The notes: generated by a model not told the origin, from the sequence alone. A stretch of DNA of 64,000 nucleotides from Macrostomum lignano (GCA_002269645.1 NIVC01002741.1:1-64000), one strand, 5' to 3'. Shown: positions 5,951 through 57,600, counted from the first letter of the stretch. A program made the numbers and translations.

Positions 5951-7269
5951 CAAGGGGTGATCAAAAAGTTCTGCAACCTTTTGTTATAGCTTTTAGTTAT
6001 AGAATCAGCAAAAGCCGAAAACTTACACATATGCGGCTATATCTGTTTGCTATATTTATATGCATTTTTGGCTTCCAAATGTGCCCCAGTAAAATTTCAC
6101 AGCCATATATTTTCCATGTGTTTTCAGTAGCTGATGGAAACATCAAAAGACAGTGTTCGCTTCTATATCTTTATGTGCATGCAACTTGGTTGCAAAGTGA
6201 CTGATATTCACACCATGTTTTGTGAATGTTTTAGCTGACTTTGCTCCATCATTTGACACAGTTGCCCGCTGGCTGCGCCATTTCTTGGAAGGCTGGGACA
6301 GCTTCAACGATGAACCGAGGTCTGGCTGACCCCGGACATCCGTGACCGAAGATGTCGTGGCCCATGCCGATGCAATAATTCGTGAGGATTGGAGCATTAT
6401 GCTGAGGTTCCTTGCCTATGAGCTTGGTGTCAGCTATGGAAGTGCTCATAACATCATGCATGAGCAACTAGGCCGCACAAAGACTTGCGCTCGGTGGGTA
6501 CCCCATCTTCTCACTCCGGAGCAGCAAGCAGAGAGGGTGCGCATCTGTCGCTTGTGGCTGCAAATTTTTGAGCCCCACGGCCCACAACAACTGTTGGATG
6601 TCATCACAGGAGACAAATGTTGGATCTCCTTCTTTTACCATGAAGGATAAGCAGTCTGACATGGTCTGGCTGGCAGAAGATGAGCCAAGGCCTGAGGTGC
6701 TGAAGACTAGATTCTGCAGTTGGAAGTGGATGTTCACCATTTTTTCAACTCTCAGGGTGTTGTATCGGTAAACATCCTTCCAGCGGGTGCCACAGTGACT
6801 GCCAGGTACTACACAGACACTGTTCTGCCAGGCGTGCTGCAGGAGCGGCAGGAACGTGCGCAAACCAGGCATGGACCTCGACTCCTGCTGCACCATGACA
6901 ATGTGGCACCGCACAGGGCGGCATCAACCATGGCGTACCTGGAGCAGCAGGGGGTCCGGCTGCTGCCCCATCCACCCTACTCTCTAGACCTAGCACCTTC
7001 CGACTTTTGGCTGTTCCTGAGGATCAAATCCGTCGTTTCTGGGAGGCCGTTTTCACGCATGCAAGACTTTGCCCAAGCGGTACATTCAGCTCTACAGGGT
7101 ATACCAACTCTGGAGTACCATGACTGCTTTCAGACATGGTGCACACGCATGCGACGGTGCATAGATAGTGGTGGAAAGTACTTTAAGGGAATGTGACACT
7201 GATTAGACGCCTCGGCTGCTGTAGCACTGAGTTGTGAGGTCACTTGCAGAACTTTTTGATCACCCCTCG
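5951..7269 (+). mobile_element. Full-length mariner (Tc1/mariner, D,D34D) transposon, degenerate
   Basis: 26-bp TIRs at 5951-5976 (caaggggtgatcaaaaagttctgcaa) and 7244-7269, 1 mismatch. TA TSD at 5949-5950 and 7270-7271. Length 1319 bp. Confidence 0.95.
6134..7196 (+). pseudogene. Mariner transposase pseudogene
   Basis: WVPHLLTPEQ, ITGD, HDNVAPH and HPPYSLDLAPSDFWLF motifs; 34 residues between the second and third catalytic D. Several stops and frameshifts split it across ORFs 6342-6650, 6568-6771 and 6720-7196. Confidence 0.93.
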
Positions 7270-9717: not shown

Positions 9718-11448
9718 TCTGCCGAACTCGATCCACTCCAGGCCAGCCGCCACCGCGAACTCGACGACACGGACCGGCGGCCGAGGCGACGCGGCGACTC
9801 CGACAGCCACCACCACCGCCGCCACCAGCATCGGCCTGACGATGCTGTCGACCAACGCGACGCTGATCGGGTTCAGCGGGACCATCGGGACCGGGATGCC
9901 CGACGCCGCGAGCACCATCGGCACAGTCAGCAGCACGACGAAGACCAGCCGCGACGAAGGGAGCGATCGCGCTCTCGGTCTGCTGACCGCTTTGACACCC
10001 GTCGGGAGCGCGGGGGCGGCGGTGGCGGTGGCAGAGGCCGCGGCCGTCGCGAGCATCGCCAGCAGCAGCAGCGGTTCGAGTGGGGCCGCCCGGACCAGCA
10101 GCGAGTGAAATCTGAAACCGGCGAAGAGCCCGACGAGAAAAAGCCGCCGCCGCCACCCAAGCAGATGGCCAACATGGGGCTCTCCGGCAAGCTGGCCGAG
10201 GACACCAACATGTACAAGGGTGTGCTCATCAAGTACAGCGAGCCCGCCAACGCCCGCATGCCCAAGAAGCGCTGGCGACTCTATCCGTTCAAGGTGAGGG
10301 CTTCTGGGGTGCACTGGGGTGCACTGGGACTCCCACATCCCCAGTTGCTGGCCCCAGCCTCCCAGATCCTCAGTTGCTGGGCCCAGCCTCCCAGATCCTC
10401 AGTTGCTGGGCCCAGCCTCCCAGATCCTCAGTTGCTGGGCCAGCCTCCCAGATCCCCAGTTGCTGAACCAGCCTCCCATATCCTCAGTTGCTGGGCCAGC
10501 CTTCCAGTTCCTCAGTTGCTGAACCAGCCTCCCAGATCCTCAGGTGCTGGGCCAGCCTCCCAGAGTGTCAGTTGCTGGGCCAGCCTCCCAGTTCCTCAGT
10601 TGCTGAACCAGCCTCCCAGATCCTCAGGTGCTGGGCCAGCCTCCCAGAGTGTCAGTTGCTGGGCCAGCCTCCCAGTTCCTCAGTTGCTGAACCAGCCTTC
10701 CAGATCCTCAGGTGCTGGGCCAGCCTCCCAGAGTGTCAGTTGCTGGGCCAGCCTTCCAGAGTGTCAGTTGCTGGGCCAGCCTTCCAGAGTGTCAGTTGCT
10801 GGGCCAGCCTCCCAGATCCTCAGTTGCTGGGCCTGCCTCCCAGATCCCCAGTTGCTGGGCCAGCCTCCCTGATCCTCAGGCCAGAAAATTAAAACCTTTC
10901 AGATCATCAATAGAGATAATATAAGCCACCATATTCCTAAACCAAAACCCGGATCATCCCAGATCCTCACTAAATTTCCCTTTCCCCACCCACCTCAGGG
11001 CGAGGAGGCCATGAAGCCGCTGTACGTGCACCGGCAGAGCGGCTACCTGATCGGCAGGGACCGCAAGGTGGCCGACATCCCGCTGGACCACCCGTCCATC
11101 TCCAAGCAGCACGCGGCCCTGCAGTACCGGCTGGTGGAGTTGGAGCAGCCGGACGGCAGCAAGTCGCGGCTGGTGAAGCCGTACATCATCGACCTGGAGT
11201 CCGCCAACGGCACCTACCTCAACGGCGAGCGCGTCGAAGCTCGGCGTTATATTGAATTAAAAGAACGCGACGTACTTAAATTCGGCTACAGTTCGCGCGA
11301 ATATGTTGTACTGAGCGAGAACGCCGGAGAAGGCGAGGACAGAGCTGCCGCCGCAGGCGGTGACGACCGAGTGCCACCCAGCGACAGCGACGACTCCGAC
11401 ATTGAACCCATGGCTGCGGCAGCGGCTTCCCGGCACAGGCAAAGATGA
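9718..11448 (+). CDS. SNIP1: Smad nuclear-interacting protein 1 (FHA-domain RES splicing factor, Pml1 homolog); 5' end not located
   Basis: Exon 9718-10293 (R/H/D-rich, then ANMGLSGKLAEDTNMYKGVLIKYSEPANARMPKKRWRLYPFK), donor GTGAGG, phase 0. Exon 10999-11448 (GEEAMKPLYVHRQSGYLIGRDRKVADIPLDHPSISKQHAALQYR...PYIIDLESANGTYLNGER...DVLKFGYSSREYV), an FHA domain typical of SNIP1. Confidence 0.95.
10340..10880. repeat. 28-bp minisatellite in the SNIP1 intron
   Basis: Unit tgctgggccagcctcccagatcctcagt and variants. Confidence 0.92.
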
Positions 11449-28059: not shown

Positions 28060-30547
28060 CTGACCATTCTCCCACTCAATCCCCACGCAGATTTTCAGAA
28101 TTTCTCGGCTGTCTCACGTTTCCCCTGGACGGATTGGTGTCGACCAGCAAGGTGCGCTGCTTGTTGATACTACTGACCACTAGTATGCAATAGTAGTATA
28201 GCTAGAAAGTCGAGCATGTTTAATAATTGGAGAGGGGAACCGTTCCAGCCAAACGCCTGGTACACCTTGATGAACGAGATGACTAGGACTGCTCAGCAGC
28301 CGCAGCCGCATCCGCAGCCGCCGCCGCCGCCGCCGCCGCCGCCTCAACGCCCATCGACGCACTCCGCTGGCAACGGCTTCGACCTGAAGTCGGTGTTGAT
28401 CCGCCGTCCGCCTCGCAGCGGCCTCGGCTTCACTGTGTCCGGCTCAGCGCCCTGCCACGTCAGCAAGGTGGAGCGCCGCAGCCCGGCGGACGCTGCCGGA
28501 GTCCGCGCCGGGGACTACATTGTCAGCGTCGACTCTGTCGGCGTGTTTCACGCCAGCAACGAGGTCGTGGTCCGCCTGCTGCGCGGCGGCGACGCAAAGG
28601 TGCGGTTGGAGCTCGGCCGGCCGCGGCCGGTGGCCCGCAGCCCCAGCCTGCCGCTGAGCCGCCCGCCGCTGCCGCCCGCCAGCTTGCTGCCATCGGCGGC
28701 CACGTCGACGGCGCTGTCCGCGGCTGCCACCGCCGTTGCAGTCGAGGGTGGCGGCGGTGGCGGCGGCGGCATCCGACGGGATGTGAAGTCGCTCTACGAT
28801 ATTGTGAGTTGGGCCGGCAGATATTTGAAACCAGCATCAGATATTACTTTTTTCGATTAATAGGCCAATTAAGTGAGGTGGGTACTGGAAGGAGGGAGTG
28901 AGGTGGGTGCTGGGAGGAGGGAGTGAGGTGGGTGCTGGGAGGAGGGAGTGAGGTGGGTGCTGGGGGGAGGGAGTGAGGTGGGTGCTGGGGGGAGGGAGTG
29001 AGGTGGGTGCTGGGGGGAGGGAGTTATGTGGGTGCTGGGGGAGGGAGTGAGGTGGGTGCTGGGAGGAGGGAGTGAGGTGGGTGCTGGGAGGAGGGAGTGA
29101 GGTGGGTGCTGGGAGGAGGGAGTGAGGTGGGTGCTGGGGGGAGGGAGTGAGGTGGGTGCTGGGAGGAGGGAGTGAGGTGGGTGCTGGGGGAGGGAGTGAG
29201 GTGGGTGCTGGAAGGAGGGAGTGAGGTGGGTGCTGGGAGGAGGGAGTGAGATGGGTGCTGGGAGGAGGGAGTGAGGTGGGTGCTGGAAGGAGGGAGTGAG
29301 GTGGGTGCTGGAAGGAGGGAGTGAGGTGGGTGCTGGGAGGAGGGAGTGAGATGGGTGCTGGGAGGAGGGAGTGAGGTGGGTGCTAGGATGAGGGAGTGGG
29401 GTGGGTGCTGGGAGGAGGGATTAAGATTTAGATTAAGAAAGCAATAGGTTCGCGTTGCAACTTTGGTAGCTTCTGAAGCAGTGTCTAGGACCTTCACTTA
29501 CAACTTCATTCCAGTCCAGTTCGGTGCCCTCTAACCCCGCATCAGCCGCTCCGAGTCCATTGCAACCGCAGCCACAGGTGGCGCCAACCCCAGGTCCGCA
29601 CCTGCACTTCTCCCACAACAACCGCATCTTCTGCCGCTCCCTCTCCTGCCTGTCGCATTCCGGCACGGTCTCGCTGGTAGAGTCCGGCCGCCTCACTCTC
29701 AGCCAGGCGTTCCTGTTCCCCGACCTGCTGCTGATGGCGCGGCCGCGGTTCAGCGCAGATCACGAGCCGCTGACGCTGGTTCGAGAGCCGATTTGCACCC
29801 GTAAGATCGTCTGCTGCTCTGTGCCGCAGGGAGCGCCATGTGAGTATCTGAGTTTGCTGCCTGAATTCATGAGAGAGGTGGGTGATAGACAATGGTCGGG
29901 AGTGAGGCAGTTGAGGGTAGAAATTCGGAGTGGGGTGGGTGCTGGATAATTGCGGGGATTGAGGTGAGTGAGGGGTAGAAATGCGGAGTGGAGTGGGTGC
30001 TGGATAATGGTCGGGAGTGAGGTGGGTGAGGGGTAGAAATGCGGAGTGGGGTGGGTGCTGGATAATGGTCGGGAGTGAGGTGGGTGAGGGGTAGAAATGT
30101 GGAGTGGGGTGGGTGCTGGATAATGGTCGGGAGTGAGGTGGGTGAGGGGTAGAAATGCGGAGTGGGGTGGGTGCTGGATAATGGTCGGGAGTGAGGTGGG
30201 TGAGGGGTAGAAATGCGGAGTGGGGTGGGTGCTGGATAATGGTCGGGAGTGAGGTGGGTGAGGGGTAGAAATGCGGAGTGGGGTGGGTGCTGGATAATGG
30301 TCGGGAGTAAGGTGGGTGAGGGGGGTAGAAACTCGGAGTGGGGTGGGTGCTGGATAATTGCGGGGAGTGAGGTGGGTCTTATCTTACTAATCGTATTCCC
30401 CTTTTCAAACCAGGCGAGGTCTGCCTGCAGTTTGTCGGACGCGGCGGTCGCAAGGAGATGCTGAGGCTGCGCTGCTCCCACGAGCTGGAGAGCCGGCAGT
30501 GGTGCCGCAGCATCCAGCAGAAGCTGCTCAAGGCCCTGGTCTTCTGA
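23047..30547 (+). CDS. C2-PDZ-PH protein similar to the N-terminal half of RGS3 (PDZ-RGS3/C2PA), ending without an RGS domain
   Basis: Exons 23047 (or ATG 23120)-23438, 26594-26647, 27207-27265, 27374-27561, 28091-28151, 28249-28803, 29515-29839, 30414-30547. All phases agree (1,1,0,2,0,0,1). C2: EAELKLSTKCSGTQLTVH/VIEARNL...SFVR/VSFCPES...LLVSVWNQ/FLGCLTF/PNAWYTLM. PDZ: SGLGFTVSGSAPCHVSKVERRSPADAAGVRAGDYI. PH-like: AFLFPDLLLMAR...RQWCRSIQQKL. A possible upstream exon ends at 22953. Confidence 0.85.
23510..23845. repeat. 33-bp minisatellite
   Basis: Unit caacatcaagaatgagaagtatagaatggattt. Confidence 0.93.
24505..26420. repeat. 14-bp TTAGGG-containing satellite, ~1.9 kb
   Basis: Unit ttaggggtggctgt with 12/13-bp variants (ttagggtgctgt); intronic. 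Confidence 0.95.
26672..27115. repeat. 26/27-bp minisatellite
   Basis: Unit gtagcggcacatcaaagagaatcgcg / ...atcgggg. Confidence 0.93.
27585..28060. repeat. (GTTA)n microsatellite
   Basis: Read directly. Confidence 0.97.
28870..29420. repeat. 25-bp G-rich minisatellite
   Basis: Unit gtgaggtgggtgctgggaggaggga. Confidence 0.93.
29870..30375. repeat. 58-bp G-rich minisatellite
   Basis: Unit gggagtgaggtgggtgaggggtagaaatgcggagtggggtgggtgctggataatggtc; period read at 30003, 30061, 30119. Confidence 0.92.
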
Positions 30548-31278: not shown

Positions 31279-34200
31279 ATGCGACTGTGGCTCACTCTGG
31301 GCCTTCTGCTGGCCACCGTCCTGCCAGCAACTGCCAGCAGCGACTTCGGCGCCACCTGCTCAGCTGTGGACTCCTTGGCTCGGCTCGCTGAGTTCTTCGC
31401 CAGGAACTCGCTGAAGATCGACGCCGACGGCTACTTTGGAGCCGCTATCGCCTTCCTGACCTTCGACTCGGCGCCCACCAGCTCCAGCGCTACGGAGCGT
31501 CGAGTTGCAGATCTGTGCGGCGACGCTCAGGCCGCCGAGCTGCGTCGAGCTGTCGATCAGCTTCGACAAGTGCTGGTCGATTTTCGAGCTCGAGTAGGCG
31601 GGAAGAAGTCGAGAAGCGGTGGAGACTATGATGTTGAAACCTACTGGGGCATTTGCCGGCCTATGGAGGCTGTGATGCGGCGGCTGCTCAGTCAGAGGCG
31701 GTTTCGCTGGCGCTGGCTTGAAGACTCGGGACATCACGGAGCTGCGGTAGACGCTAAGCAGGCTCAGGCTTGGCTGAAGTCCTTGAAGAGTCGGTTGGTA
31801 GAGTACAATGAGCCCAGGGGCGACGCGTGCTTCAGGAGGATGTTGGCGAGTAGAAAGTGGAGGTGAGCGCTTGCTGATGAGGTGTCAGGCAAGTAGTGGA
31901 GGTTTCAGGCAAGTAGCGGATGTGTCAGGCAAGTAGTGGAGATGTCAGGCAAAGTATGGAGGTGTCAGACAAAGGATGGAGGTGTCAGACAAAGGATGGA
32001 AGTGTCAGACAAAGGATGGAGGTGTCAGACAAAGGATGGAGGTGTGAGACAAAGGATCAAGGTGTCAGACAAAGGATCAAGGTGTCAGACAAAGGATCAA
32101 GGTGTCAGACAAAGAATGGAGGTGTCAGACTGAACAGTACCAGAAAGTACGTTAAAACAACTACCGTAATTCGCTCCCCTCTACTCTGCTTCAGTCGTTC
32201 AGCCAGCTGCTCCGCCTCATCAGCCTGCAGGCGGATGTTTCTCAGCGCCGAGCCCAACAAGGGCTACGCCCTGACGCACCAGCTGATCTACTGGGCCGCC
32301 TCCATCGATGTGAGTTAACTCCAAATCCCAAGGTTCAGTAAAACATGGAGAAACATGGAGGGAGATAGTGGCATATAAATAATGCTTAGGTCTCGAGTGC
32401 ATCCATTTCCGCCTCGAACTGGCACTCACTGCAGCGCAACTGCCACCTGAAGCTGTCCGATGGTCGGCCAGTGGACCGGGCTCTGCTGTCCGGCGCCTGT
32501 GGCCGAGTCCTGTCTGAGCACCGCCACATCTTGGCGCTGAACTCGCCAAGTAGCACCCTAATTGACTTGACCTTGGAGCAGGGTGAGTCCCGCAATTGCA
32601 ACCAGCGTTGAAGCAATTCTGCCCATGGATGGCTGTACACACTCACACACTGGCTGTTTTTGACATCCATGCAATCGATCTTCTCGCTTCCAATCCAAGA
32701 GTTCAAGGGTCCATGCTCTCTTGAAACTCCAAGTGTCCTTGGATGAAAACTTCGCCAGATTAGTTGATTGGTCGGTCGCGTTACCCCTGCTCTGACCACC
32801 CCTTAACTACAGCTGTCATCTGCGGCTCACTGGGCTACCGGGACTTCTTCACGGACTCGACCTTGCTACTCCTGCGCCGGCTGCAGGACGAGAGGCTGGG
32901 CTGCATCCCTGAGGAAATCGCGGCGTCAGTGACTTGGAAAAATGCCACGGTGTTGCCGGGACGAAGGCTCATGCACAACACGGTGCTGAACGGTGAGATC
33001 TGGAGCTCTGCCAGCAGCCAGTCATTAGCTCCCAGTCAGTAGCTGGTCATTAATCTACAGTCAGTAGCTGGTCATTAACCTACAGTCAGTAGCCGGTCAT
33101 TAACCTACAGTCAGTAGCTGGTCATTAACCTACAGTCAGTAGATGGTCATTAACCTACAGTCAGTAGCCGGTCATTAATCTGCAGTCAGTAGCTGGTCAT
33201 TAACCTACAGTCAGTAGCCGGTCATTAACCTACAGTCAGTAGATGGTCATTAACCTACAGTCAGTAGCCGGTCATTAACCTACAGTCAGTAGATGGTCAT
33301 TAACCTACAGTCAGTAGCCGGTCATTAACCTACAGTCAGTAGCTGGTCATTAACCTACAGTCAGTAGATGGTCATTAACCTACAGTCAGTAGCCGGTCAT
33401 TAACCTACAGTCAGTAGATGGTCATTAACCTACAGTCAGTAGCCGGTCATTAACCTACAGTCAGTAGATGGTCATTAACCTACAGTCAGTAGCCGGTCAT
33501 TAACCTACAGTCAGTAGCTGGTCATTAACCTACAGTCAGTAGATGGTCATTAACCTACAGTCAGTAGCCGGTCATTAACCTACAGTCAGTAGCTGGTCAT
33601 TAACCTACAGTCAGTAGATGGTCATTAACCTACAGTCAGTAGCCGGTCATTAATCTGCAGTCAGTAGCTGGTCATTAACCTACAGTCAGTAGCCGGTCAT
33701 TAACCTACAGTCAGTAGATGGTCATTAACCTACAGTCAGTAGCCGGTCATTAACCTACAGTCAGTAGATGGTCATTAACCTACAGTCAGTAGCCGGTCAT
33801 TAACCTACAGTCAGTAGCTGGTCATTAACCTACAGTCAGTAGATGGTCATTAACCTACAGTCAGTAGCCGGTCATTAACCTACAGTCAGTAGCTGGTCAT
33901 TAACCTACAGTCAGTAGATGGTCATTAACCTACAGTCAGAAGCCGGTCATTAACCTACAGTCAGTAGCTGGTCATTAACCTACAGTCAGTAGATGGTCAT
34001 TAACCTACAGTCAGTAGCCGGTCATTAATCTGCAGTCAGTAGCTGGTCATTAACCTACAGTCAGTAGCCGGTCATTAACCTACAGTCAGTAGCTGTTCAT
34101 TAACCTACAGTCAGTAGCCGGTCATTAACCTACAGTCAGTAGATGGTCATTAACCTACAGTCAGTAGCCGGTCATTAACCTACAGTCAGTAGCTGGTCAT

Positions 34201-42464: not shown

Positions 42465-45400
42465 ATGCGGCACTCGCAACTTCTAGCGGTGCTAGTGGCG
42501 CTGAGCATCGCCTTGCACGGCGCGCAGGCCGCGAAAGGCAAGAAACCTGACGTCGCTCAGTACCAACAGGCAGCAGACGCCGTCGCTTCGAACGTCAACA
42601 AGGCGGCCGAGAAGTCTGAGCAGCTGGTCAACGAGCACATGTCCGCCGTTAATAAAGACCCTGGCGCGCTCATCACAAAGGATACCATGAAGAACATGAT
42701 GGCCGGGAGAACGTTCCTGCCGCAGAAGGCCGGCAGTAGAACCGTTTCGGTGCAGGCTAACCAGGGTTTCAACGGACTTACAAACTACCAGCCTTCCGGT
42801 TGGAAGATTACGGAGACCATGAGCGGTCCAACGGACAAGAAAGATGAGCCAACGGCAGCAAAGGAACCGGTGTACACCTATCCGATGGGCCTGGGCCCTG
42901 TTCTCATGAACCAGTGCACGGAAAGAAGCTACGAGAAGTCCAGCCCTTGCTACAACAGCAAACTGTTTGATCTGCAGAACAAAGTTTGTCAAAACCAAAT
43001 TGACGCGGCCAACTACATCGGCGTTGGGTTTGACGGCAGAGGCTACTACAACGCTCAGAGCAGAAAGGCCAGTCTGGTGCAGCGATCCTGCGCCAACAGG
43101 GCCACCTTTATGGGGCAGGACATTCCGGACACGATGAATATATTTGGCATATTCGAGACAGTGGCAGAGACGAAATCCTTCCAGTCCGCCAGCCAGTACA
43201 TGCGCTACATCCGGCACAAAGCCGGCCTGTCAAACCAGAAGAACCTGTTCTCTAGTGAGGCCAGCAAATACTCAAAGGGCAGTTCATTTGGAGCCAACCT
43301 TGGAGGAATTGGCGCCATCGTTGGTGGAGCCATCGGTGCAGTAGCCGGTGGGCCTGCGGGGGCAGGAATGGGAGCACAGCTGGGAGGCGCCATCGGAGGC
43401 TCTATTGGTGGTGGCAGCGGCTCAGGGTCCGGAAACTCCAAATCAAAACAAAAGGGACAGAGCTCGTCGAAAATGATGCAGAGTGAGAAGGCAAAAGCAA
43501 GAAAGGGTTCTGCTCACAGCTTCTTTGCGATCATGTATGTCAACGTGATCCTGTACGACATCAGCCTGGACGAAATCAAGCCCAACGACGTCAGTCTCAA
43601 CGTTCTAAAGGACTACATGAATCTTCCCGCATCGTACTATTCCATCGGGGCCGATGTGAAATACCAGAACTTCCTTCTGCGATGGGGCACCCACTTCATC
43701 CGGTCGGGTAAGTTCGGCGGTCAGCTGAAGATCACGAAGACGTCCAAGACCAGCAAGATCCAGTCGCAGGAGCAGTTCGCGCGTATTGCCGAGACGGAGT
43801 TTCAATCCATGTTTGCCACTTTGCAGTCCAGTTACACCCAGAAATCCAGCGGCTGGTCTTTCCTTGGTTTTGGTAGCAAGAAAAGATCGACATCTCAAAA
43901 ATCTTCAGCAAAGTCAAAGGCGGAGCATAAGAGCACGATGAGTGCAGGGCAGTCACAGTCCGACAGTTCCAAACAGTCTCAGTTTACTCAAACTACAGTC
44001 GAGGCTCAAGGTGGAACTCCCGAGATCGCCGAAGCCCTGGTTGACTTTTACACTCCTGCATTCAAGCAGCTGTATCACGACTGGCTGGTCTCGATCAAGG
44101 ACTACGCAAAACCCTTCGAGTTCCAGCTCAGAGCAGTTGATGAGATTTTCAACATGAATATGGACGACTTGTTTCCTGGAGGCAAAGTTGACTTCGGCTG
44201 TGTTGGAGGTGACAGCAGCAAAGTGAAAATTCTTGTGGAACCGGAAACGAACAGACGTTACTACATCGACGTGAGGACGAAATTCGACAACTCAAGCAAA
44301 TTTGAACAGAAAGTGAAAGTATACTGCAAGTACTCACACCTTGAAGACTTCAAAGAAGACCTGAACAAAAGAAGGATTTCTCTGGAGAGGGCCATCGGTG
44401 TGTACATGGCCGAGGGCCCATTTCCGACATCGTCATTCGAGCTGAAGGCCGGAGAGCCAGGCTGCGAGGAGGCAACGCTGGGAACAGTCAGCGCTTCGAT
44501 GGCGTCAAAGTCCAGAGTGATGAGCTACGCAGAGCTGAAAAAGTCGCCATTCCTGATCGCGTTTGATCTGCCTCAGCCCGTGCCGAATCTGATCCCCATG
44601 AAAGCAAAGTACCGGATTATCTTCAAAGACGGCATTTGGTTTGCCACTGAGCCCACGCAGACGTCCATGCACTTGTACGACGGTTGCGAAATTTCAGAAT
44701 CCACGGAGGCCAGGATCTGCTTTAGAAACATAATGCTGAATTATGATGAAAAGACAGGCCTTCTCCGTGTCGATCCAAGAGTTTTCCCAATAACCAAGTC
44801 TCGCATTCCATCGCTGCCGGAGTGGCTGTCTGGGTCCATCGTAGCCAGGGCTCACAGACTGGAAATGACTAAAAGCATCAAGGCGGACGTTTTCAGCGGC
44901 CGAGCGGCCCTGCCGTGCAACATCCGATGGCTCAACTCTCACCGACTTGACCCAAAGAAGCAAGAGAACTGCATTCACTTCACCGCTGCTAGCGAGGGCG
45001 ACATCTTCGTGATATTTTCCGCTATTCCTAAAGACCACACTACATGGTACTACCTGCAGATCAACTCCGAAGGTGTTTCCTTCTATCAGGGTCTAAAATT
45101 GAGAAAGCGGGACGTGCAGAAAGGAATGGGAATTCTGGGAGACAAGAACCTGTTCCAGTCGTTCTTCGTCTGCGTGATACAGAACTCCGGCACGGTGATG
45201 ATGCAGTACGGCAAGGCTGACCCGGAGAGCGAGGTCGGCACCGTCTTCTCCGGCTACACCTTCGCCCGCGACAGCCAGTTCAGCAGACTGTCGTTCTACA
45301 CCTTCGGCTCCGGTTCCAAGGAAGTCTCGCTAATGGACATCCGACTCACCAGGACTATGCCGAAGGTGGAGTGTCTGAGCAAGAATTACAAAAAGGTGAA

Positions 45401-48400
45401 GGGCCACTGCGTGCTGAAGTGTCACGCAGAGTGCATCAACTGTGATGCAGCAAACGACAACAAGGCCTGTCACCAGTGCAAAAATGTCCGCGTGGAGACG
45501 GGAAAAGGAGCTATTAAAGTGATCGAGTGTCTCTCCAAATGTCCTGCTGGGAAGTATGTAAGTCAAACTAAAAAAAGGTTATGTGTTCCGTGCCTGGCCG
45601 GAACATTCAAAAGCGGCAAGGGGAACGAGAAATGTGCATCGTGTCCAGCGGGATCGTTCAGCTCTGCCGGGGCTACAAAGTGCTCAAAGTGCAAACCGGG
45701 CACTTTTAACGCTAAACCAGGCCAGTCAAAGTGCACCAAGTGTTCCGGTGGGACTTTCTCCGGCAAGGGAGCCACGGTGTGTCAGAAATGCCCGGTCGGA
45801 AGCTTTTCCGGTGAAGGACAGCAAAAATGTTCGCCGTGTCCTTACGGTCACTACGGAGACTCGCAAGGGCTGAAGCAGTGCAAGCCGTGCTCCAGAGGCT
45901 TCTCGGCTGCAAAGAGGGGCCAGGTAAAGTGCACCAAGTGTCCTGCCGGTACGTCAAGTGTGGAGGGCTCCAGGACTTGCAGCAACTCGTGCAAAAAAGG
46001 CGAGTATAGTCCCGCGAAAGGTCAACCATGCAAAAAGTGCTCTCCAGGTACATTCTCCGAGAGTGCGGGCTCGATGAAGTGCTCGCAGTGCGCCCCAGGT
46101 TCATACCAGCCGAATGGGGGGCAGTCTGTTTGCATCAAAGCTCCAAAAGGCACGTATGTATCACAAAGAGGAGCAAAAAGTTACCAAAGCTGCCCTGCTG
46201 GTACAGTCAACTCTCAAGTAGGACAGGCGAACAGCTCTGCCTGTCGAAAGTGTCCTGCTGGAACCTTCAGCAGCTCGGCAACTAGCTGTAAAAAATGTCC
46301 AGTTGGTCAGTTTTCGCCAGGCTCTGGTTCCCGAGCTTGTTCGAGATGTCCCAAGGGTCAATATGCTCCAGTCGAAGGGATGAAAGGATGCAAGCATTGC
46401 GACCTGGGCACCTACGCGCCGAATGAAGGATCTGCGGTCTGTAAAATTGCACCACAGGGGACCTATGTTTCAAATAAAGGCTCTATAAGACCCATAAAGT
46501 GTCCCGCCGGACATTATAACGCGAAAGTTCGTCAGTCGAGTAGTTCCGCTTGCCTGCCTTGTCAGAAAAACTATTTCGCTTCATCAAGTGGGTCCTCAAA
46601 GTGCAGAAAGTGCAGTGCCGGTAGCGTCACGGCCAAAACCGGCTCCACAAGGTGTGCCAGCTGCCCAGCGGGATCCTACGCCCACTCCAGCGGCTCTTGC
46701 CAGTACTGCTCACCCGGAACCTACATTTCGTCTACCGGAGCGGCTTCCTGCAGCAAGTGCAAGGCTGGCACATTCGCGCCCGGCCGAGGTTCGAGAAACT
46801 GCAGGCCTTGTTCTGCAGGCTCGTTTTCGAATGCCGGCTCGTCGAGATGCACGCAATGCTCTCTGGGCTACTACGCTCCGTCATCAGGATCGAGTCGTTG
46901 TATGAAGTGTCCGTACGGGTCCATCGCTACGAACGCTCAGCGAACCAAGTGCTACAGTAAGTTTTGGTGTCTTGTGTTTGCTTATTTTCAGAATCAAGAA
47001 AGGATTGTGCCAATGGCTAGTGCTGCCAATAGGTAGCTACTATGGCTAGTGCTGCCAATGGGTAGCTACTATGGCTAGTGCTGCCGATGGGTAGCTACTA
47101 TGGCTAGTGCTGCCAATGGGTAGCTACTATGGCTAGTGCTGCCAATGGGTAGCTACTATGGCTAGTGCTGCCAATGGGTAGCTACTGTGGCTAGTGCTGC
47201 CAATGGGTAGCTACTATGGCTAGTGCTGCCAATGGGTAGCTACTATGGCTAGTGCTGCCGATGGGTAGCTACTATGGCTAGTGCTGCCAATGGGTAGCTA
47301 CTATGGCTAGTGCTGCCGATGGGTAGCTACTATGGCTAGTGCTGCCAATGGGTAGCTACTATGGCTAGTGCTGCCAATGGGTAGCTACTATGGCTAGTGC
47401 TGCCAATGGGTAGCTACTGTGGCTAGTGCTGCCAATGGGTAGCTACTATGGCTAGTGCTGCCAATGGGTAGCTACTATGGCTAGTGCTGCCGATGGGTAG
47501 CTACTATGGCTAGTGCTGCCAATGGGTAGCTACTATGGCTAGTGCTGCCGATGGGTAGCTACTATGGCTAGTGCTGCCGATGGGTAGCTACTATGGCTAG
47601 TGCTGCCAATGGGTAGCTACTATGGCTAGTGCTGCCGATGGGTAGCTACTATGGCTAGTGCTGCCGATGGGTAGCTACTATGGCTAGTTCTGCCGATGGG
47701 TAGCTACTATGGCTAGTGCTGCCGATGGGTAGCTACTGTGGCTAGTGCTGCCGATGGGTAGCTACTATGGCTAGTGCTGCCGATGGGTAGCTACTATGGC
47801 TAGTGCTGCCAATGGGTAGCTACTATGGCTAGTGCTGCCGATGGGTAGCTACTATGGCTAGTTCTGCCGATGGGTAGCTACTATGGCTAGTTCTGCCGAT
47901 GGGTAGCTACTATGGCTAGTGCTGCCGATGGGTAGCTACTATGGCTAGTTCTGCCGATGGGTAGCTACTATGGCTAGTGCTGCCGATGGGTAGCTACTGT
48001 GGCTAGTGCTGCCGATGGGTAGCTACTATGGCTAGTGCTGCCGATGGGTAGCTACTATGGCTAGTGCTGCCAATGGGTAGCTACTATGGCTAGTGCTGCC
48101 GATGGGTAGCTACTATGGCTAGTTCTGCCGATGGGTAGCTACTATGGCTAGTGCTGCCGATGGGTAGCTACTGTGGCTAGTGCTGCCGATGGGTAGCTAC
48201 TATGGCTAGTGCTGCCAATGGGTAGCTACTATGGCTAGTGCTGCCGATGGGTAGCTACTATGGCTAGTGCTGCCGATGGGTAGCTACTGTGGCTAGTGCT
48301 GCCGATGGGTAGCTACTATGGCTAGTGCTGCCGATGGGTAGCTACTATGGCTAGTGCTGCCAATGGGTAGCTACTATGGCTAGTGCTGCCGATGGGTAGC

Positions 48401-50967
48401 TACTATGGATAGTGCTGCCGATGGGTAGCTACTATGGCTAGTGCTGCCGATGGGTAGCTACTATGGCTAGTGCTGCCAATGGGTAGCTACTATGGCTAGT
48501 GCTGCCGATGGGTAGCTACTGTGGCTAGTGCTGCCGATGGGTAGCTACTATGGCTAGTGCTGCCGATGGGTAGCTACTATGGCTAGTGCTGCCGATGGGT
48601 AGCTACTATGGCTAGTGCTGCCGATGGGTAGCTACTATGGCTAGTGCTGCCGATGGGTAGCTACTATGGCTAGTGCTGCCAATGGGTAGCTACTATGGCT
48701 AGTGCTGCCGATGGGTAGCTACTATGGCTAGTGCTGCCGATGGGTAGCTACTATGGCTAGTGCTGCCGATGGGTAGCTACTATGGCTAGTGCTGCCAATG
48801 GGTAGCTACTATGGCTAGTGCTGCCGATGGGTAGCTACTGTGGCTAGTGCTGCCGATGGGTAGCTACTATGGCTAGTGCTGCCGATGGGTAGCTACTATG
48901 GCTAGTGCTGCCGATGGGTAGCTACTATGGCTAGTGCTGCCGATGGGTAGCTACTATGGCTAGTGCTGCCGATGGGTAGCTACTATGGCTAGTGCTGCCA
49001 ATGGGTAGCTACTATGGCTAGTGCTGCCGATGGGTAGCTACTGTGGCTAGTGCTGCCGATGGGTAGCTACTATGGCTAGTGCTGCCGATGGGTAGCTACT
49101 ATGGCTAGTGCTGCCGATGGGTAGCTACTATGGCTAGTGCTGCCGATGGGTAGCTACTATGGCTAGTGCTGCCGATGGGTAGCTACTATGGCTAGTGCTG
49201 CCGATGGGTAGCTACTATGGCTAGTTCTGCCGATGGGTAGCTACTATGGCTAGTGCTGCCGATGGGTAGCTACTGTGGCTAGTGCTGCCGATGGGTAGCT
49301 ACTATGGCTAGTGCTGCCGATGGGTAGCTACTATGGCTAGTGCTGCCAATGGGTAGCTACTATGGCTAGTGCTGCCGATGGGTAGCTACTATGGCTAGTG
49401 CTGCCGATGGGTAGCTACTATGGCTAGTTCTGCCGATGGGTAGCTACTATGGCTAGTGCTGCCAATGGGTAGCTACTATGGCTAGTGCTGCCGATGGGTA
49501 GCTACTATGGCTAGTGCTGCCGATGGGTAGCTACTATGGCTAGTTCTGCCGATGGGTAGCTACTATGGCTAGTGCTGCCAATGGGTAGCTACTATGGCTA
49601 GTGCTGCCGATGGGTAGCTACTATGGCTAGTGCTGCCGATGGGTAGCTACTATGGCTAGTTCTGCCGATGGGTAGCTACTATGGCTAGTGCTGCCGATGG
49701 GGAATATTTATTATAGCCATTTTCCAAACCGAAATTCGACTTCAAGAATATTTTGTTGTTTTTTAGCAATAACGATTTTCATACAGAACGTGGGCTTTTG
49801 TAGTGCATTTACACAATAAGCGTGCGCCTTGTGAGTGTACAGACTATTACGTAACGCGTTAGACGTGTTATGGAAGCATTGAAGAAGTTAACCTACTCGT
49901 ATGCACCAAGAGGTTCACGCACCCCTCAAATCATAAGTTACGTTTTTAATCGCTCTCGTTGGTCGTCTCCTGCACCCCACAGAGTTTGGCGAGTGCTATT
50001 TCGCTAATAAGAACTTCGTCAGTACTTCAGTGAGCCGCACAAAGAGCTCCAAGCCGTGCCAGAGCTGGACGGTTCGTTATTGTTCCTGGCATACGCTGAA
50101 AAGGACCTGCCACGTCCCCAACCCTACTGCGAAAGCGTCCCAATCCACTGGCAACACGTGCCGAACCTTCACGGAGCAAGGCGGCTCGAACAAGCCGTGG
50201 TGTTACACGAAGACTTCGACTCGATGGGAAACTTGCAACATTCCTCTTTGCGGACCCAGTGAGTACATCATAGTGGCCAGCTAGTGGGTGTACTTTTTAG
50301 GTGTGGCCGGTGGGTTGTCGTGCGATTCGCAGCCATGACGGCCAACCCCCAAGGCACAGAAAGTGTACATGCCTGACGATTAGAAAGTCAGGGCCGCTGT
50401 ACACCTGTGTGAGCGCGTGTGAGTGCGCAACACATATCGCTTTCCATTCCTGTAGCAATCATTAACAGGCTGCCGATATGGACTGCCGATTGCTAGCATC
50501 AAAAAGGAGAAATTAACGCTGGAGGTCAGTGAGCGAAGCTTGAATCTTGAGCATTGGCTATCTGATTGGCTATGACGCTGACAATTGCAAATGAGGTTTC
50601 AGTAGACTGGCTCGTACAGATAGAACCTCCGTTCGCTAAGTAAAATAGATTAGAGATCACGTTCGGCAGTTCTTTTACTTTTTTAATCTGTGTTGCAGGA
50701 CTGCGCGAGTGCTACAAGAAAGGCACGAAGAACTTCGTGTCGGGCATCGCAGTGACCCAGAGCGGCAAGCCGTGCCAGGGCTGGGAGATCAAGAGCTGCC
50801 CCAGCGGCACAGTTGGGAAAACCTGCCACGTGCCCAACACTGCTCTGAAGCTGGCCCGACTGATTGGAAACACCTGTCGCATCACCACTGCCAGCAGCGA
50901 GAAGCGTCCGTGGTGCTACACCAGGACGTCGAGGAGATGGGAAACGTGCAACATTCCACAGTGCTGA
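42465..50967 (+). CDS. Secreted ~1678-aa MACPF (perforin-like) protein: signal peptide, MACPF, FAMeT-like, furin-like and GCC2/GCC3 Cys-rich repeats, two kringles
   Basis: Exons 42465-46956, 49983-50258, 50699-50967 (5037 nt; both junctions phase 1). Signal MRHSQLLAVLVALSIALHGAQA. MACPF: YIGVGFD, signature RWGTHFIRSGKFGG (43680-43721), EAQGG, WLVSIKDYAKPF. FAMeT-like at ~44965-45360. Many CPAG(T/S)F/Y repeats at 45540-46950. Kringles contain CQ.W...NTCR...PWCYT...WETCNIP.C. Confidence 0.88.
47010..49700. repeat. 29-bp intronic satellite, ~93 copies
   Basis: Unit ggtagctact(a/g)tggctagt(g/t)ctgcc(g/a)atg. Confidence 0.97.
50301..50428 (+). other. Structured dispersed repeat, best-preserved copy, in the MACPF intron between the kringle exons
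   Basis: gggttg/caaccc stem, then cacag(50355)-aaa-gtgtac-atg-cctgac-gattagaaa-gtcagg-gccgct-gtacac-ctgtg(50409). Confidence 0.75.
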
Positions 50968-53820: not shown

Positions 53821-54661
53821 GTCATGCTGCAAGTATGGCTTGCACAGTCCTCTCCGATCATTCAGTTGGATTAGTGGCACGCTGTGGTCAGTGCTGATCA
53901 GAAGCACTTCGTGGTTGCATCGATTGGCTCATTGGAGCAGCGCCTAGTTTTCGTCGAGATTCGTCGAGGCATCTTTCTGATGCCTAAGGCCTTTGATCCA
54001 TTTGAAACCAGTCTGTACGCGTCCGCAGAAAAGTGTCTGTCGCAGAAGACAAAAGTGATTCGTGTTGGAATGAACGTTGATGTTGATGTTTTGGTGCGCA
54101 ATAACCATGCACTGGTGTGCTCAGGAAACATGACAGGAAACGAAAAGAAGCTGACTGGACTATCGTCTTCATTTCTGTCTCATGTCTTTGAGTTGCAATC
54201 TAGAGAAGCACAGTGGCGCGTTGGATTTAATAGTACATGTACAACTTATTGTCAGGGAACAATTAAATTTCTAAGCACTGGAGATGAATGGGAGGGAGAC
54301 GATTATCCACTGTCAGCATGAGCGACTACGGCTTAATAGTCTCTGGCTATGATAAATTGGGCATATTTTTAGATTCCCTCAGCCAGTGTAATAGAAGCGG
54401 GGGACTTTCCCTAGATTGGGGGATGGGTTGAGGCAACAGACATTTCGCATATATTTCGCATCCATGATATTCCTTCATCCATGCTTCCACCCAGTCACAG
54501 TCGAAAAGCCACATTTGAAGTTACTTGTGTCACATTCGAGTTTGAAAAGGTATACAAAACAACCCCTGGCAAGCGACCATAGAGGATTCCTTGAGACCAT
54601 GAGAGCAGACCAGCACCACTCACACAGCGTTGGGAGCGCAGCCAGAAAAGAGGCAGCAGGC

Positions 54662-57600
54662 ATGCACTATTGGGAGATCCTGCAACTTCTGACTCTTCTT
54701 CTGTTGCCAACCTATCGAACTGCAGCCGCCAGCGTGGAGAATTCTGGCATGATTTGTGCAGCAGCTGACTCGCTGTCTCGTCTGGCTGAGCTCTTCGCCA
54801 GGAACTCGCTGAAGATCGACGCCGACGGCTACTTTGGAGCCGCGATCGCCTTCCTGACCTTCGACTCGGCGCCCGCCAGCGCCAGCGCTACGGAGCGTCG
54901 AGTTGCAGATCTGTGCGGCGACGCTCAGGCCGCCGAGCTGCGTCGAGCTGTCGATCAGCTTCGACAAGTGCTGGTCGATTTTCGAGCTCGAGTAGGCGGG
55001 AAGAAGTCGAGAAGCGGTGGAGACTATGATGTTGAAACCTACTGGGCCATTTGCCGGCCGCTAGAAGCTGTGATGCGGCGGCTGCTCAGTCAGAGGCGGT
55101 TCCGCTGGAGCTGGCTTGAAGACTCGGGACATCACGGAGCTGCGGTAGACGCCAAGCAGGCTCAGGCTTGGCTGAAGTCCGTTGAAAGATTGGTGATGAA
55201 GTACAATGATACGGTGGGCGATGCCTGCTTCAACAGATTGTTGGACAGTCCAAGCAAAAGGTGAGTCTTCAGCGACCTGTCAAGATGAAGGGTGATCAGG
55301 AGTTTGACCCTGGCAGCATTAACTGCAAGAGCCGAAAATGTTTGATTTCAACTGCTTGAACTTTAGGTTTGTAGATGCTTGGATTTTTATGCAGCTTTTT
55401 GCCAAACATTCTCGAATGTTGCAACTTCAAAATGTCCCAACAGCCTCAAGTTCAAGAGGTCTAAAGAAGGTGCATTTCGAGTTGGGTGGAACATGAGATG
55501 CGACTGTAGATTCAGCAATGGTCGCTGCATCCAAAAATAGCGTGGAATACAGAATTATCTAAAGCCCTTGCAAAAATATTAATGATTCGCTTCAGTCGCT
55601 CATCGCCCTGCCAGCCTCCGCCAGCATGCAGGTGGCTGTTTCTCAGCGCTGAGCCAAGCATGGGCTACGCCCTGACGCACCAGCTGATCTACTGGGCCGC
55701 CGCCATCGATGTGAGCCAGACTCTTTATCATGGTCCTGTTTCCATAGCCTAGGATTTCCACATATTGCAGCGATCTCGGGATGCCCCGCACTGCAGCGCT
55801 CCTGCCACCTCAGACTGTCCACTGGCCGGTCAGTGGACCAGTCTGTGGTCGCCGAGGCCTGTCGGTCTGCCCTGGATGAGCACCGGAAAATTCTGGCCTT
55901 GACTTCGGCTGGCATCGACATGATTGACCTGGCATTGGAGCAGGGTGAGCATACTTGAGACCAGGCGCATCGCCACCGGGGGGGAACCCCAGTAAAAGCT
56001 AAGGGGGGCATGCCAGTGCTTTGTCCCTCCACCCCACCTTGTGACCCGTTGTGGCAATCAATAATTATTCTTTCAGGCGCCAAAATATAGCGCCATTGGT
56101 GCCAAAATGAGTGCCTGCGGCGCTAAAATGAGTGACTGCCGCGCTAAAATGAGTGCCTGTGGCGCTAAAATGAGTACCCGCGGCGCTAAAATGAGTGACT
56201 GCGGCGCTAAAATGAGTGCCTGTGGCGCTAAAATGAGTGCCTGTGGCGCTAAAATGAGTACCCGCGGCGCTAAAATGAGTGCCTGCGGCGCTAAAATGAG
56301 TGCCTGTGGCGCTAAAATGAGTGCCTGCGGCGCTAAAATGAGTGCCTGCGGCGCTAAAATTAGCGCTGACAACACCGATTCTCAAATTAATGGACATGTA
56401 GGAATTTAGTCATGTACATGTTGAATTCTTGGCTTCGCCCCCCCCCACCATAAAATTCATGGCGACGCCTCTGCTTGAGACCTGGAACACTGTTGGCGGT
56501 TGTAATTTTTAACTGACGATGGGAAAGTCAGGGCCACTGTGACACTCTGTGTGAGCATGTTGCCGAGTAGGCATGGCATTGACATTCCTCAGTTTTACTA
56601 ACTTCCTATATACTAAAAATGAGTTGTCTGTATGTATGTGGGTAGGTATGCGATAGATTTCAGAAAAAATGGCTCAACCGATTTTCTTCAAACTTGCACC
56701 ATTCGATCAGAAATTTTCCTGGGACGGTACATGCATCTTGGCTAAAAAATTGCTCAATATTAAAGGGATTAAATATTCGAAAAACAGGCTTTTTTGCAAA
56801 GGTCAAGCGGCTCTTTCGATCTGAAATGCATTGTAAGAATGCTAGAGAAAAAACTGACTGACTGAATTTCAATTCTGATAAAGATTGCATCACAACAAGT
56901 TGAAAACAGTGCCAAAGAAATGCACACACAACTTGATTGAAATTGCGTAACAATATTGCTAACTTAAATTGACACTGATACTGGCTGACTAAGAAATTGA
57001 TTATGTCATAACTTTTTACTCTAACCAACTTGCTGTAAGCATTGAATTATAAGGGCCACAAATCATGTTCGCCAATTGAAAAGAGATAGCATAGATGCGA
57101 ACAGACTGGACTGCTAATGCAGCGACCTGGGTTCCAATCTTAGTGCTGCAAAAAGATTTTTTTATTAAAACACCTTGAAAACACGAAACTGCTAAACATA
57201 AAAAAGCACAATGTCAAACATAAAAGAGGCACCATGTCAAACATTACATGGGCACCATGTAAAACATATACGTCACTCTATGTCAAACATTAAAGAGCCA
57301 CCATGTGAAACATAAAAGAGTCACCATTTCGAAAATTAAAGAGCCACCACGTCGAACATTAAAGACCCACCATGTCAAACGTAAAAGAGCCACCATGAAG
57401 AACATTAAATAGCCACCATGCCAAACATAAAAGAGCCACTATGTCGAACATTAAAGAGCTAGCATGTCAAACATTAAAGAGCCACCATGTCGAACATAAA
57501 AGAGCCGCCATGTAAAACATTAAACAGCCACATTGTCAAACATAAAAGAGCCACCATGTAAGACATTTAAGAGCCACCATGTGAAACATTTAAGAGCCAC

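Follow-up and report, generated by a model that had tools for sequence, protein, structure and literature searches.

A kringle-tipped MACPF protein of Macrostomum lignano and the apparently undescribed family to which it belongs

In a 64,000-nucleotide stretch of the genome of the free-living flatworm Macrostomum lignano (GCA_002269645.1, NIVC01002741.1:1-64000; hereafter the window), a three-exon gene on the plus strand encodes a secreted-type protein in which a MACPF domain is followed by a conserved central domain, a predicted concanavalin-A-like jelly roll, a cysteine-rich rod and two C-terminal kringles. The gene is already annotated, as a hypothetical or MACPF domain-containing protein, yet it is unstudied, and it belongs to what is apparently an undescribed conserved family within the MACPF superfamily. 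From the domains of the product, we infer that a secreted pore-forming effector is its best reading. A preliminary description of the sequence had proposed an intact three-exon reading frame, a signal peptide, a MACPF domain, a long GCC2/GCC3 stalk and two kringles, all of which were recovered; its two further proposals, a FAMeT-like block and an unusual architecture, held in part and are taken up with the results that bear on them. Coordinates of all features are collected in Table 1.

The MACPF domain was recognized both by sequence and by predicted structure. The Pfam MACPF model (PF01823) scored 47.3-48.2 bits against a cut-off of 21.5, and the stretch WGTHFIRSGKFGG fits the signature (Y/W)-G-(T/S)-H-(F/Y)-x6-G-G, with R406, G408, T409, H410, F417, G418 and G419 invariant in an alignment of 42 homologues; a second GG motif is, like the full signature, invariant across the family. 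An AlphaFold model of residues 140-990 was built on the 42 homologues (mean predicted local distance difference test score, pLDDT, of 73.7), in which the MACPF core strands reached pLDDT values of 80-94. The top Foldseek matches of this model in the PDB were all MACPF proteins, namely GNIP1Aa, perforin, Mpf2Ba1, MPEG1, TgPLP1, C9, C6 and C8 (E = 4e-12 to 1e-8, probability 1.0), so that the lack of a MACPF fold, named in the preliminary description as a refuting outcome, was not borne out. Two segments of low confidence sit between the core strands at the usual places of the MACPF transmembrane hairpin regions TMH1 and TMH2. Compared at the sequence level, a family profile gave weak matches to PDB entries at the signature only (C8 alpha, C9, GNIP1Aa and perforin; E = 1e-4 to 0.1), and no close relative with a solved structure was found in that search.

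A separate observation concerns the TMH1-like region, within which a hydrophobic stretch of Gly, Ala and Ile shows GxxxG spacing several times over (GANLGGIGAIVGGAIGAVAGGPAGAGMGAQLGGAIGGSIGGG; window 43287-43424, residues 275-320). In hydrophobicity this stretch ranks second among the windows of the protein, and it resembles glycine-zipper membrane motifs; it is kept in the M. lignano paralogues P0002 and P0003 and is replaced by a Ser-rich stretch in the paralogue P0004.

Directly beyond the MACPF domain lie two conserved domains. The first is a central domain of 240 residues between the MACPF domain and the jelly roll, overlooked in the preliminary description, for which no Pfam match was obtained and for which a second AlphaFold model, of residues 570-975 (pLDDT 82.3), returned no clear fold match in the PDB by Foldseek. 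GH32 levanases, which gave long alignments at a root-mean-square deviation of about 20-25 Angstrom, were rejected as a match to the central domain, the jelly roll alone being responsible for them. The second is the jelly roll itself, whose Foldseek matches were legume lectins, galectins, laminin-G/neurexin LNS domains and the C-terminal sandwich of GH32 enzymes, with a probability of about 1.0 and a TM-score of up to 0.6 on galectins. In an exhaustive search of 1.84 billion cluster representatives, the jelly-roll profile matched 211 proteins only; all of the full-length matches that were checked carry an N-terminal MACPF domain, and the remainder are fragments. Since the full-length matches examined were all accompanied by MACPF, the combination of MACPF, central domain and jelly roll forms the core of a distinct and old lineage.

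The jelly roll coincides with the block that had been called FAMeT-like. The block is indeed beta-rich and strongly conserved, resembling Methyltransf_FA (PF12248) in its beta-rich structure and in size, and across 23 homologous blocks Methyltransf_FA was the most frequent weak Pfam family (3/23, best E = 0.0015). It was also the sole Pfam family colinear over the whole block, at profile positions 5-129 of 140, with 14.2 bits for the family consensus and 16.4 bits for the block of the annelid Owenia. Every one of these scores lies below the 24.2-bit cut-off, however, and the M. lignano block itself had no Methyltransf_FA match even at E <= 10. No FAMeT-type proteins occurred among the listed representatives matching the jelly-roll profile, which were in-family proteins and fragments only; likewise, a word-indexed search with the same profile at E <= 10 gave unannotated in-family fragments only and no FAMeT-type proteins. 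PF12248 is a member of the concanavalin-like clan, which would suit the predicted concanavalin-A-like fold. A remote relationship between the block and Methyltransf_FA is thus plausible and compatible with the modelled fold, with membership unproven.

Following the jelly roll, a furin-like cap leads into a rod of Ephrin_rec_like / GCC2_GCC3 repeats, which holds 60 Cys and 21 CxxCxxG units and which the Pfam Ephrin_rec_like model (PF07699) matched at 174 bits over 14 stretches (cut-off 23.1). The best PDB sequence match of rod residues 1048-1330 was the Chlamydomonas mastigoneme protein Mst1 (8tx1, E = 8e-34), and the rod is probably tens of nanometres long.

The two kringles at the C-terminal end were found when the C-terminus was scanned alone, with the Pfam Kringle model (PF00051) giving 51.8 bits over two stretches against a cut-off of 34.3; the full-length Pfam scan misses both of them and the precomputed annotations omit Kringle as well. 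The pair aligns to kringles K1-K2 of plasminogen (HMMER, E = 3e-26), the two are about 52% identical to one another, and the canonical six Cys are kept, as are the motifs PWCYT and W-E-x-C. In the alignment to plasminogen, Arg71, Trp62 and Tyr64 are retained. Two further observations can be made on these modules. Each has 8 Cys rather than the usual 6, the extra pair being placed in the Cys2-Cys3 loop (RYCSWHTLKRTCH and KSCPSGTVGKTCH); and the phase 1-1 exon of kringle 1, with a terminal kringle 2 exon (to 50964) after a phase-1 intron, has the classical layout of exon shuffling.

Secretion of the protein was assessed from its hydrophobicity profile and cysteine content. The N-terminal leader, called a signal peptide by eye, contains the most hydrophobic 19-residue window of the protein (MRHSQLLAVLVALSIALHGAQA), and the only other strongly hydrophobic stretch is the GxxxG-rich segment described above. 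Apart from the leader no transmembrane helix was found, there was no hydrophobic segment after residue 905, the C-terminal end is a kringle and not an anchor, and the total of 88 Cys is an even number. The leader peptide, the high and even Cys count and the missing anchor together indicate a secreted protein. As a side observation, in many family members (among them P0008, P0014, P0018 and P0024) a dibasic KR site lies a short way behind the signal peptide and precedes a conserved helical segment, an arrangement suggestive of propeptide cleavage; in the M. lignano protein the corresponding position (window 42534-42560) reads KGKK.

The gene model that joins these domains is well defined. A large plus-strand open reading frame begins at 42345 with its first ATG at 42465, and translation of the three exons gives a spliced coding sequence of 5037 nt, or 1678 codons plus the stop, with 0 internal stops. 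Over all 1678 residues the product is identical to an NCBI entry, the hypothetical protein BOX15_Mlig022132g2 [Macrostomum lignano], whose gene is placed at 42465-50967 of contig NIVC01002741.1, in agreement with the window numbering and with the gene model of the preliminary description; the UniRef label of the 1678-residue protein is 'MACPF domain-containing protein'. The exon-1 frame does read on for 26 codons beyond the donor, to a stop at 47034-47036, so that the kringle exons might belong to another transcript or stay unspliced to exon 1, leaving a kringle-less product of 1523 residues. Such an artefact is very unlikely: consensus splice sites (GTAAGT / AG and GTGAGT / AG) bound the two GT-AG introns, both of which are in phase 1, exon 2 codes for exactly one kringle, the deposited annotation gives the identical product, and neither a separate start codon nor a signal peptide is present upstream of the kringle exons. 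In addition, the paralogue P0002 links rod and kringle at the equivalent point (KCRPEFGECYY vs KCYKFGECYF). Splicing of the kringle exons is therefore supported by the consensus junctions, by the correspondence of exon 2 to a single kringle and by the same join in this paralogue. When the protein was compared with the window by tblastn, neither another paralogue nor an additional kringle exon turned up; the only other matches were spurious, aligning the Cys-rich rod with a 17-bp satellite at 15.9-16.6 kb. Satellite DNA also lies in and beside the gene, where intron 1 is mostly a 29-bp satellite (92.7 copies, 97% matches, 47013-49701) and a 23-bp satellite (40.7 copies, 41272-42206) stops some 260 bp short of the start codon on its upstream side.

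Searches with the first 986 residues revealed homologues with E = 1e-100 to 1e-170, 30-37% identity and 64-98% query coverage in Branchiostoma (many genes), the annelid Owenia, the hemichordate Glandiceps and the anthozoans Nematostella, Actinia, Oculina, Montipora, Desmophyllum and Dendronephthya; M. lignano itself has at least four paralogues, with 56-69% identity. MACPF also accompanies the match to the jelly-roll profile in a bdelloid rotifer protein and in MMETSP transcripts labelled as marine protist, and the family is expanded in amphioxus and in M. lignano. A Pfam scan of 39 family representatives found Ephrin_rec_like in 18 of them, recognition-type tips in the form of F5/8-type-C (discoidin) in 6, SRCR in 5, C-type lectin in 3, chitin-binding in 2 and SUEL lectin in 1, and in addition EGF in 5, Sushi in 2 and HYR and TSP1 in 1 each. 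Kringle was found in a single representative, P0002, the kringles of the present gene being missed by the full-length scan. Among the other M. lignano paralogues, P0003 and P0004 had weak, sub-threshold discoidin-like matches at the tip and P0005 had no match, so that kringle tips are exchanged within the species for discoidin-like (sub-threshold) ones. Because 18 of the 39 have Ephrin_rec_like and the tips differ, the MACPF-plus-rod design is a family trait and the tip its variable part.

These results qualify the architecture that had been described as unusual. The core is conserved from cnidarians to amphioxus and the rod is shared by many relatives, whereas the kringle tip alone looks lineage-specific, being so far, judged by sequence, confined to two paralogues of M. 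lignano. Across 5.8 billion proteins, the kringle pair as query gave two weak fragments and no other protein combining MACPF with a kringle, at a low sensitivity that leaves its absence elsewhere unproven. Source names across the family were all 'uncharacterized' or 'hypothetical', and no paper on this gene or family was found in literature searches on Macrostomum, amphioxus and Nematostella MACPF/perforin proteins and on MACPF with Methyltransf_FA or GCC2_GCC3. From other MACPF proteins of the species, 13 MPEG1 genes have been described (PMC10781884). The database name of one family member, P0047 (UniRef A0A1I8JDZ1, M. lignano), is 'RNase H domain-containing protein', and RNase_H was matched once in the Pfam scan of the family; the probable cause is fusion of the gene model with a retroelement.

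Compared with known systems, the protein shares with perforin-1, MPEG1/perforin-2 and C9 the MACPF signature and predicted fold, a secreted nature and an accessory domain directly C-terminal of the pore domain. Its sequence similarity to perforin-1, MPEG1 and C9 is limited to the signature, however, and the central domain, jelly roll, rod and kringles take the place of their accessory parts. Unlike perforin-1, it gave no C2 or EGF Pfam match in residues 570-1033, and unlike C6-C9 it gave no TSP1 or LDLa Pfam match around the MACPF domain. Unlike MPEG1, it has neither a C-terminal transmembrane anchor nor a cytosolic tail, and Pfam and PDB searches, made without a P2-specific model, returned no match to an MPEG1-type accessory domain; membership of MPEG1 was rejected on the missing transmembrane anchor. 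The concept is shared with apple-snail perivitellin-2 (PmPV2/PcPV2), a lectin-delivered MACPF toxin (bioRxiv 10.1101/2019.12.23.880021) in which a MACPF pore domain is likewise joined with a carbohydrate-binding targeting module. That toxin is a two-chain dimer of MACPF and tachylectin subunits, whereas here a lectin fold of another class lies on the same chain, ahead of a rod and kringles. The rod is built, as in Mst1 and other Ephrin_rec_like / GCC2_GCC3 proteins such as ELAPOR1, from a short disulfide-knotted repeat giving an extended shape; unlike in Mst1, a flagellar hair fibre protein lacking MACPF, the repeats here form a spacer between pore domain and kringles. The kringles share the six Cys, the PWCYT and W-E-x-C motifs and the phase 1-1 exon module with those of plasminogen, apolipoprotein(a) and ROR, and differ from plasminogen-type kringles in two extra Cys each, a replaced Asp-x-Asp and a very divergent sequence.

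Combined, these findings modestly favour a secreted, lectin-targeted pore-forming effector with a role in defence against microbes or in attack on prey or food cells. Under this reading, secretory cells would release the protein, its invariant jelly roll would bind a glycan or lipid on the target membrane, and MACPF monomers would oligomerise so that the two TMH regions could refold into a beta-barrel pore. Oligomerisation and beta-barrel insertion are the default expectation because the MACPF signature and fold are canonical and the signature is family-invariant. The jelly roll, also overlooked as a targeting module in the preliminary description, is a better candidate than the distal kringles for the primary membrane- or glycan-binding role, because its place in the chain is that of the C2 domain in perforin and of the P2 domain in MPEG1. 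The rod with its interchangeable tip, formed by kringles here and by lectin or scavenger-receptor modules in relatives, may then give the protein a second specificity, particular to the lineage, or tether it. Since the tips of relatives are typical of pattern recognition, they point towards defence or attack on food organisms. Several points weigh against an effector of this kind. At about 110 residues the TMH1 region is unusually long, and it is rich in Gly; the lysine-binding Asp-x-Asp (Asp55/Asp57) centre of the kringles is lost by alignment, being T-E-Q in kringle 1 and S-S-E in kringle 2; a long rod would keep a tip-bound MACPF domain distant from the target membrane; no functional or expression data for any family member were found in the literature; and astrotactins, BRINPs and Torso-like are non-lytic MACPF proteins despite conserved signatures.

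In a rather unlikely alternative, the protein is a non-lytic extracellular MACPF protein in the manner of astrotactins, BRINPs and Torso-like, its MACPF fold serving as an interaction or signalling scaffold and its lectin fold, rod and kringles positioning it in extracellular matrix, mucus or adhesive secretions. The similarity of the rod to a structural fibre protein, Mst1, would agree with this, as would the kringle, EGF, TSP1 and Sushi tips, which are also typical matrix modules. The family-wide invariance of the full signature and of the second GG motif argues against it, as do the pattern-recognition lectins and SRCR domains that are the commonest non-rod tips and the expansion of the family in amphioxus and M. 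lignano, gene-family expansion being typical of immune effectors and less so of developmental genes. The geometric problem of a long rod separating tip and pore domain would disappear if the kringles and rod instead anchored a pore-former to the worm's own mucus, glycocalyx or fibres, from where the head would act on touching microbes. Target binding could then come from the conserved jelly roll beside the MACPF domain, and kringles classically bind proteins, not membranes. Such self-tethering is nonetheless unlikely, and it is equally improbable that the tip plays no part in target recognition: the lectin, SRCR and chitin-binding tips of relatives usually recognise non-self, and the lost lysine-binding centre counts against a kringle anchor too. 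Returning to the lectin-targeted effector, a wider version of it can be put forward tentatively and with considerable doubt, namely that the proteins form an ancient, undescribed 'modular perforin' family in which the invariant lectin-fold domain and a novel central domain would prime the MACPF pore and a rigid Cys-knot rod would bear recognition tips shuffled in varying combinations. With similar reserve, this family might extend across cnidarians, annelids, flatworms, rotifers, hemichordates, amphioxus and possibly protists, having been lost in vertebrates and ecdysozoans, and it could conceivably act in innate immunity as an effector system of its own, alongside complement and perforin.

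Animal immunity has MACPF proteins among its central killing devices, and what these hit is set by their accessory domains. The present gene illustrates a conserved and unstudied design in which a lectin-fold domain is fused beside the pore domain and a rod carries freely swapped tips. If the family forms pores, it would widen the invertebrate immune-effector repertoire and offer natural re-targetable pore-formers; if it is non-lytic, it would be a large addition to the poorly understood non-lytic MACPF proteins. RNA interference and transgenesis exist for M. lignano, making the function testable there.

Table 1. Features of the MACPF gene and of its surroundings, in window coordinates
Feature	Position	Strand	Details
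Exon 1	42465..46956	+	codons 1-1497 plus 1 nt; donor ACA|gtaagt at 46956/46957; signal peptide, MACPF, central domain, jelly roll, Cys-rich rod
Signal peptide	42465..42533	+	residues 1-23, MRHSQLLAVLVALSIALHGAQAA; most hydrophobic window, judged by eye
MACPF domain	43017..44159	+	about residues 185-565; Pfam match 343-563
TMH1-like region	43182..43514	+	residues 240-350; Gly/Ser/Ala-rich; low pLDDT between core strands
MACPF signature	43683..43721	+	residues 407-419; WGTHFIRSGKFGG
TMH2-like region	43752..43994	+	residues 430-510; Ser/Gln/Lys-rich; low pLDDT between core strands
Central domain	44172..44900	+	residues 570-812; family-specific, mixed alpha/beta, 5 Cys
Concanavalin-A-like jelly roll (predicted)	44907..45362	+	residues 815-966; pLDDT about 90; formerly 'FAMeT-like' block
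Cys-rich rod	45366..46955	+	residues 968-1497; furin-like cap, then Ephrin_rec_like / GCC2_GCC3 repeats
Intron 1	46957..49982	+	phase 1, GT-AG
Exon 2	49983..50258	+	276 nt, phase 1-1; acceptor cacag|AG, donor GTGAGT; exactly kringle 1 (residues 1502-1587)
Intron 2	50259..50698	+	phase 1, gtgagt...ttgcag
Exon 3	50699..50967	+	acceptor tgcag|GA; kringle 2 (residues 1594-1678), TGA stop
Open reading frame resembling C-terminal part of mariner-type transposase	6720-7196	+	by eye (…HHDNVAPHRA…DLAPSDFWLF…), unconfirmed
FHA-domain open reading frame	11011-11448	+	Pfam 67.8 bits; between 28-bp and 23-bp satellite arrays
PDZ-domain open reading frame	28216-28860	+	Pfam 42.3 bits
Flanking paralogous genes	about 31279-31866 and 54416-55264 (L001 1-3133 and 22018-23288)		DUF4735 (PF15882), precomputed annotation

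Outside the MACPF gene, the mariner-like reading frame had no Pfam match at E <= 0.01, and the reading frame with the PDZ domain probably belongs, as a single exon, to a larger gene. Single reading-frame pieces of the flanking DUF4735 genes gave no Pfam match when scanned alone; these two genes are paralogous to each other and have the motif '...SLARLAEFFARNSLKIDADGYFGAAIAFLTFDS...' in common. The window as a whole is very rich in tandem arrays, with 39 Tandem Repeats Finder (TRF) rows at a score >= 200.

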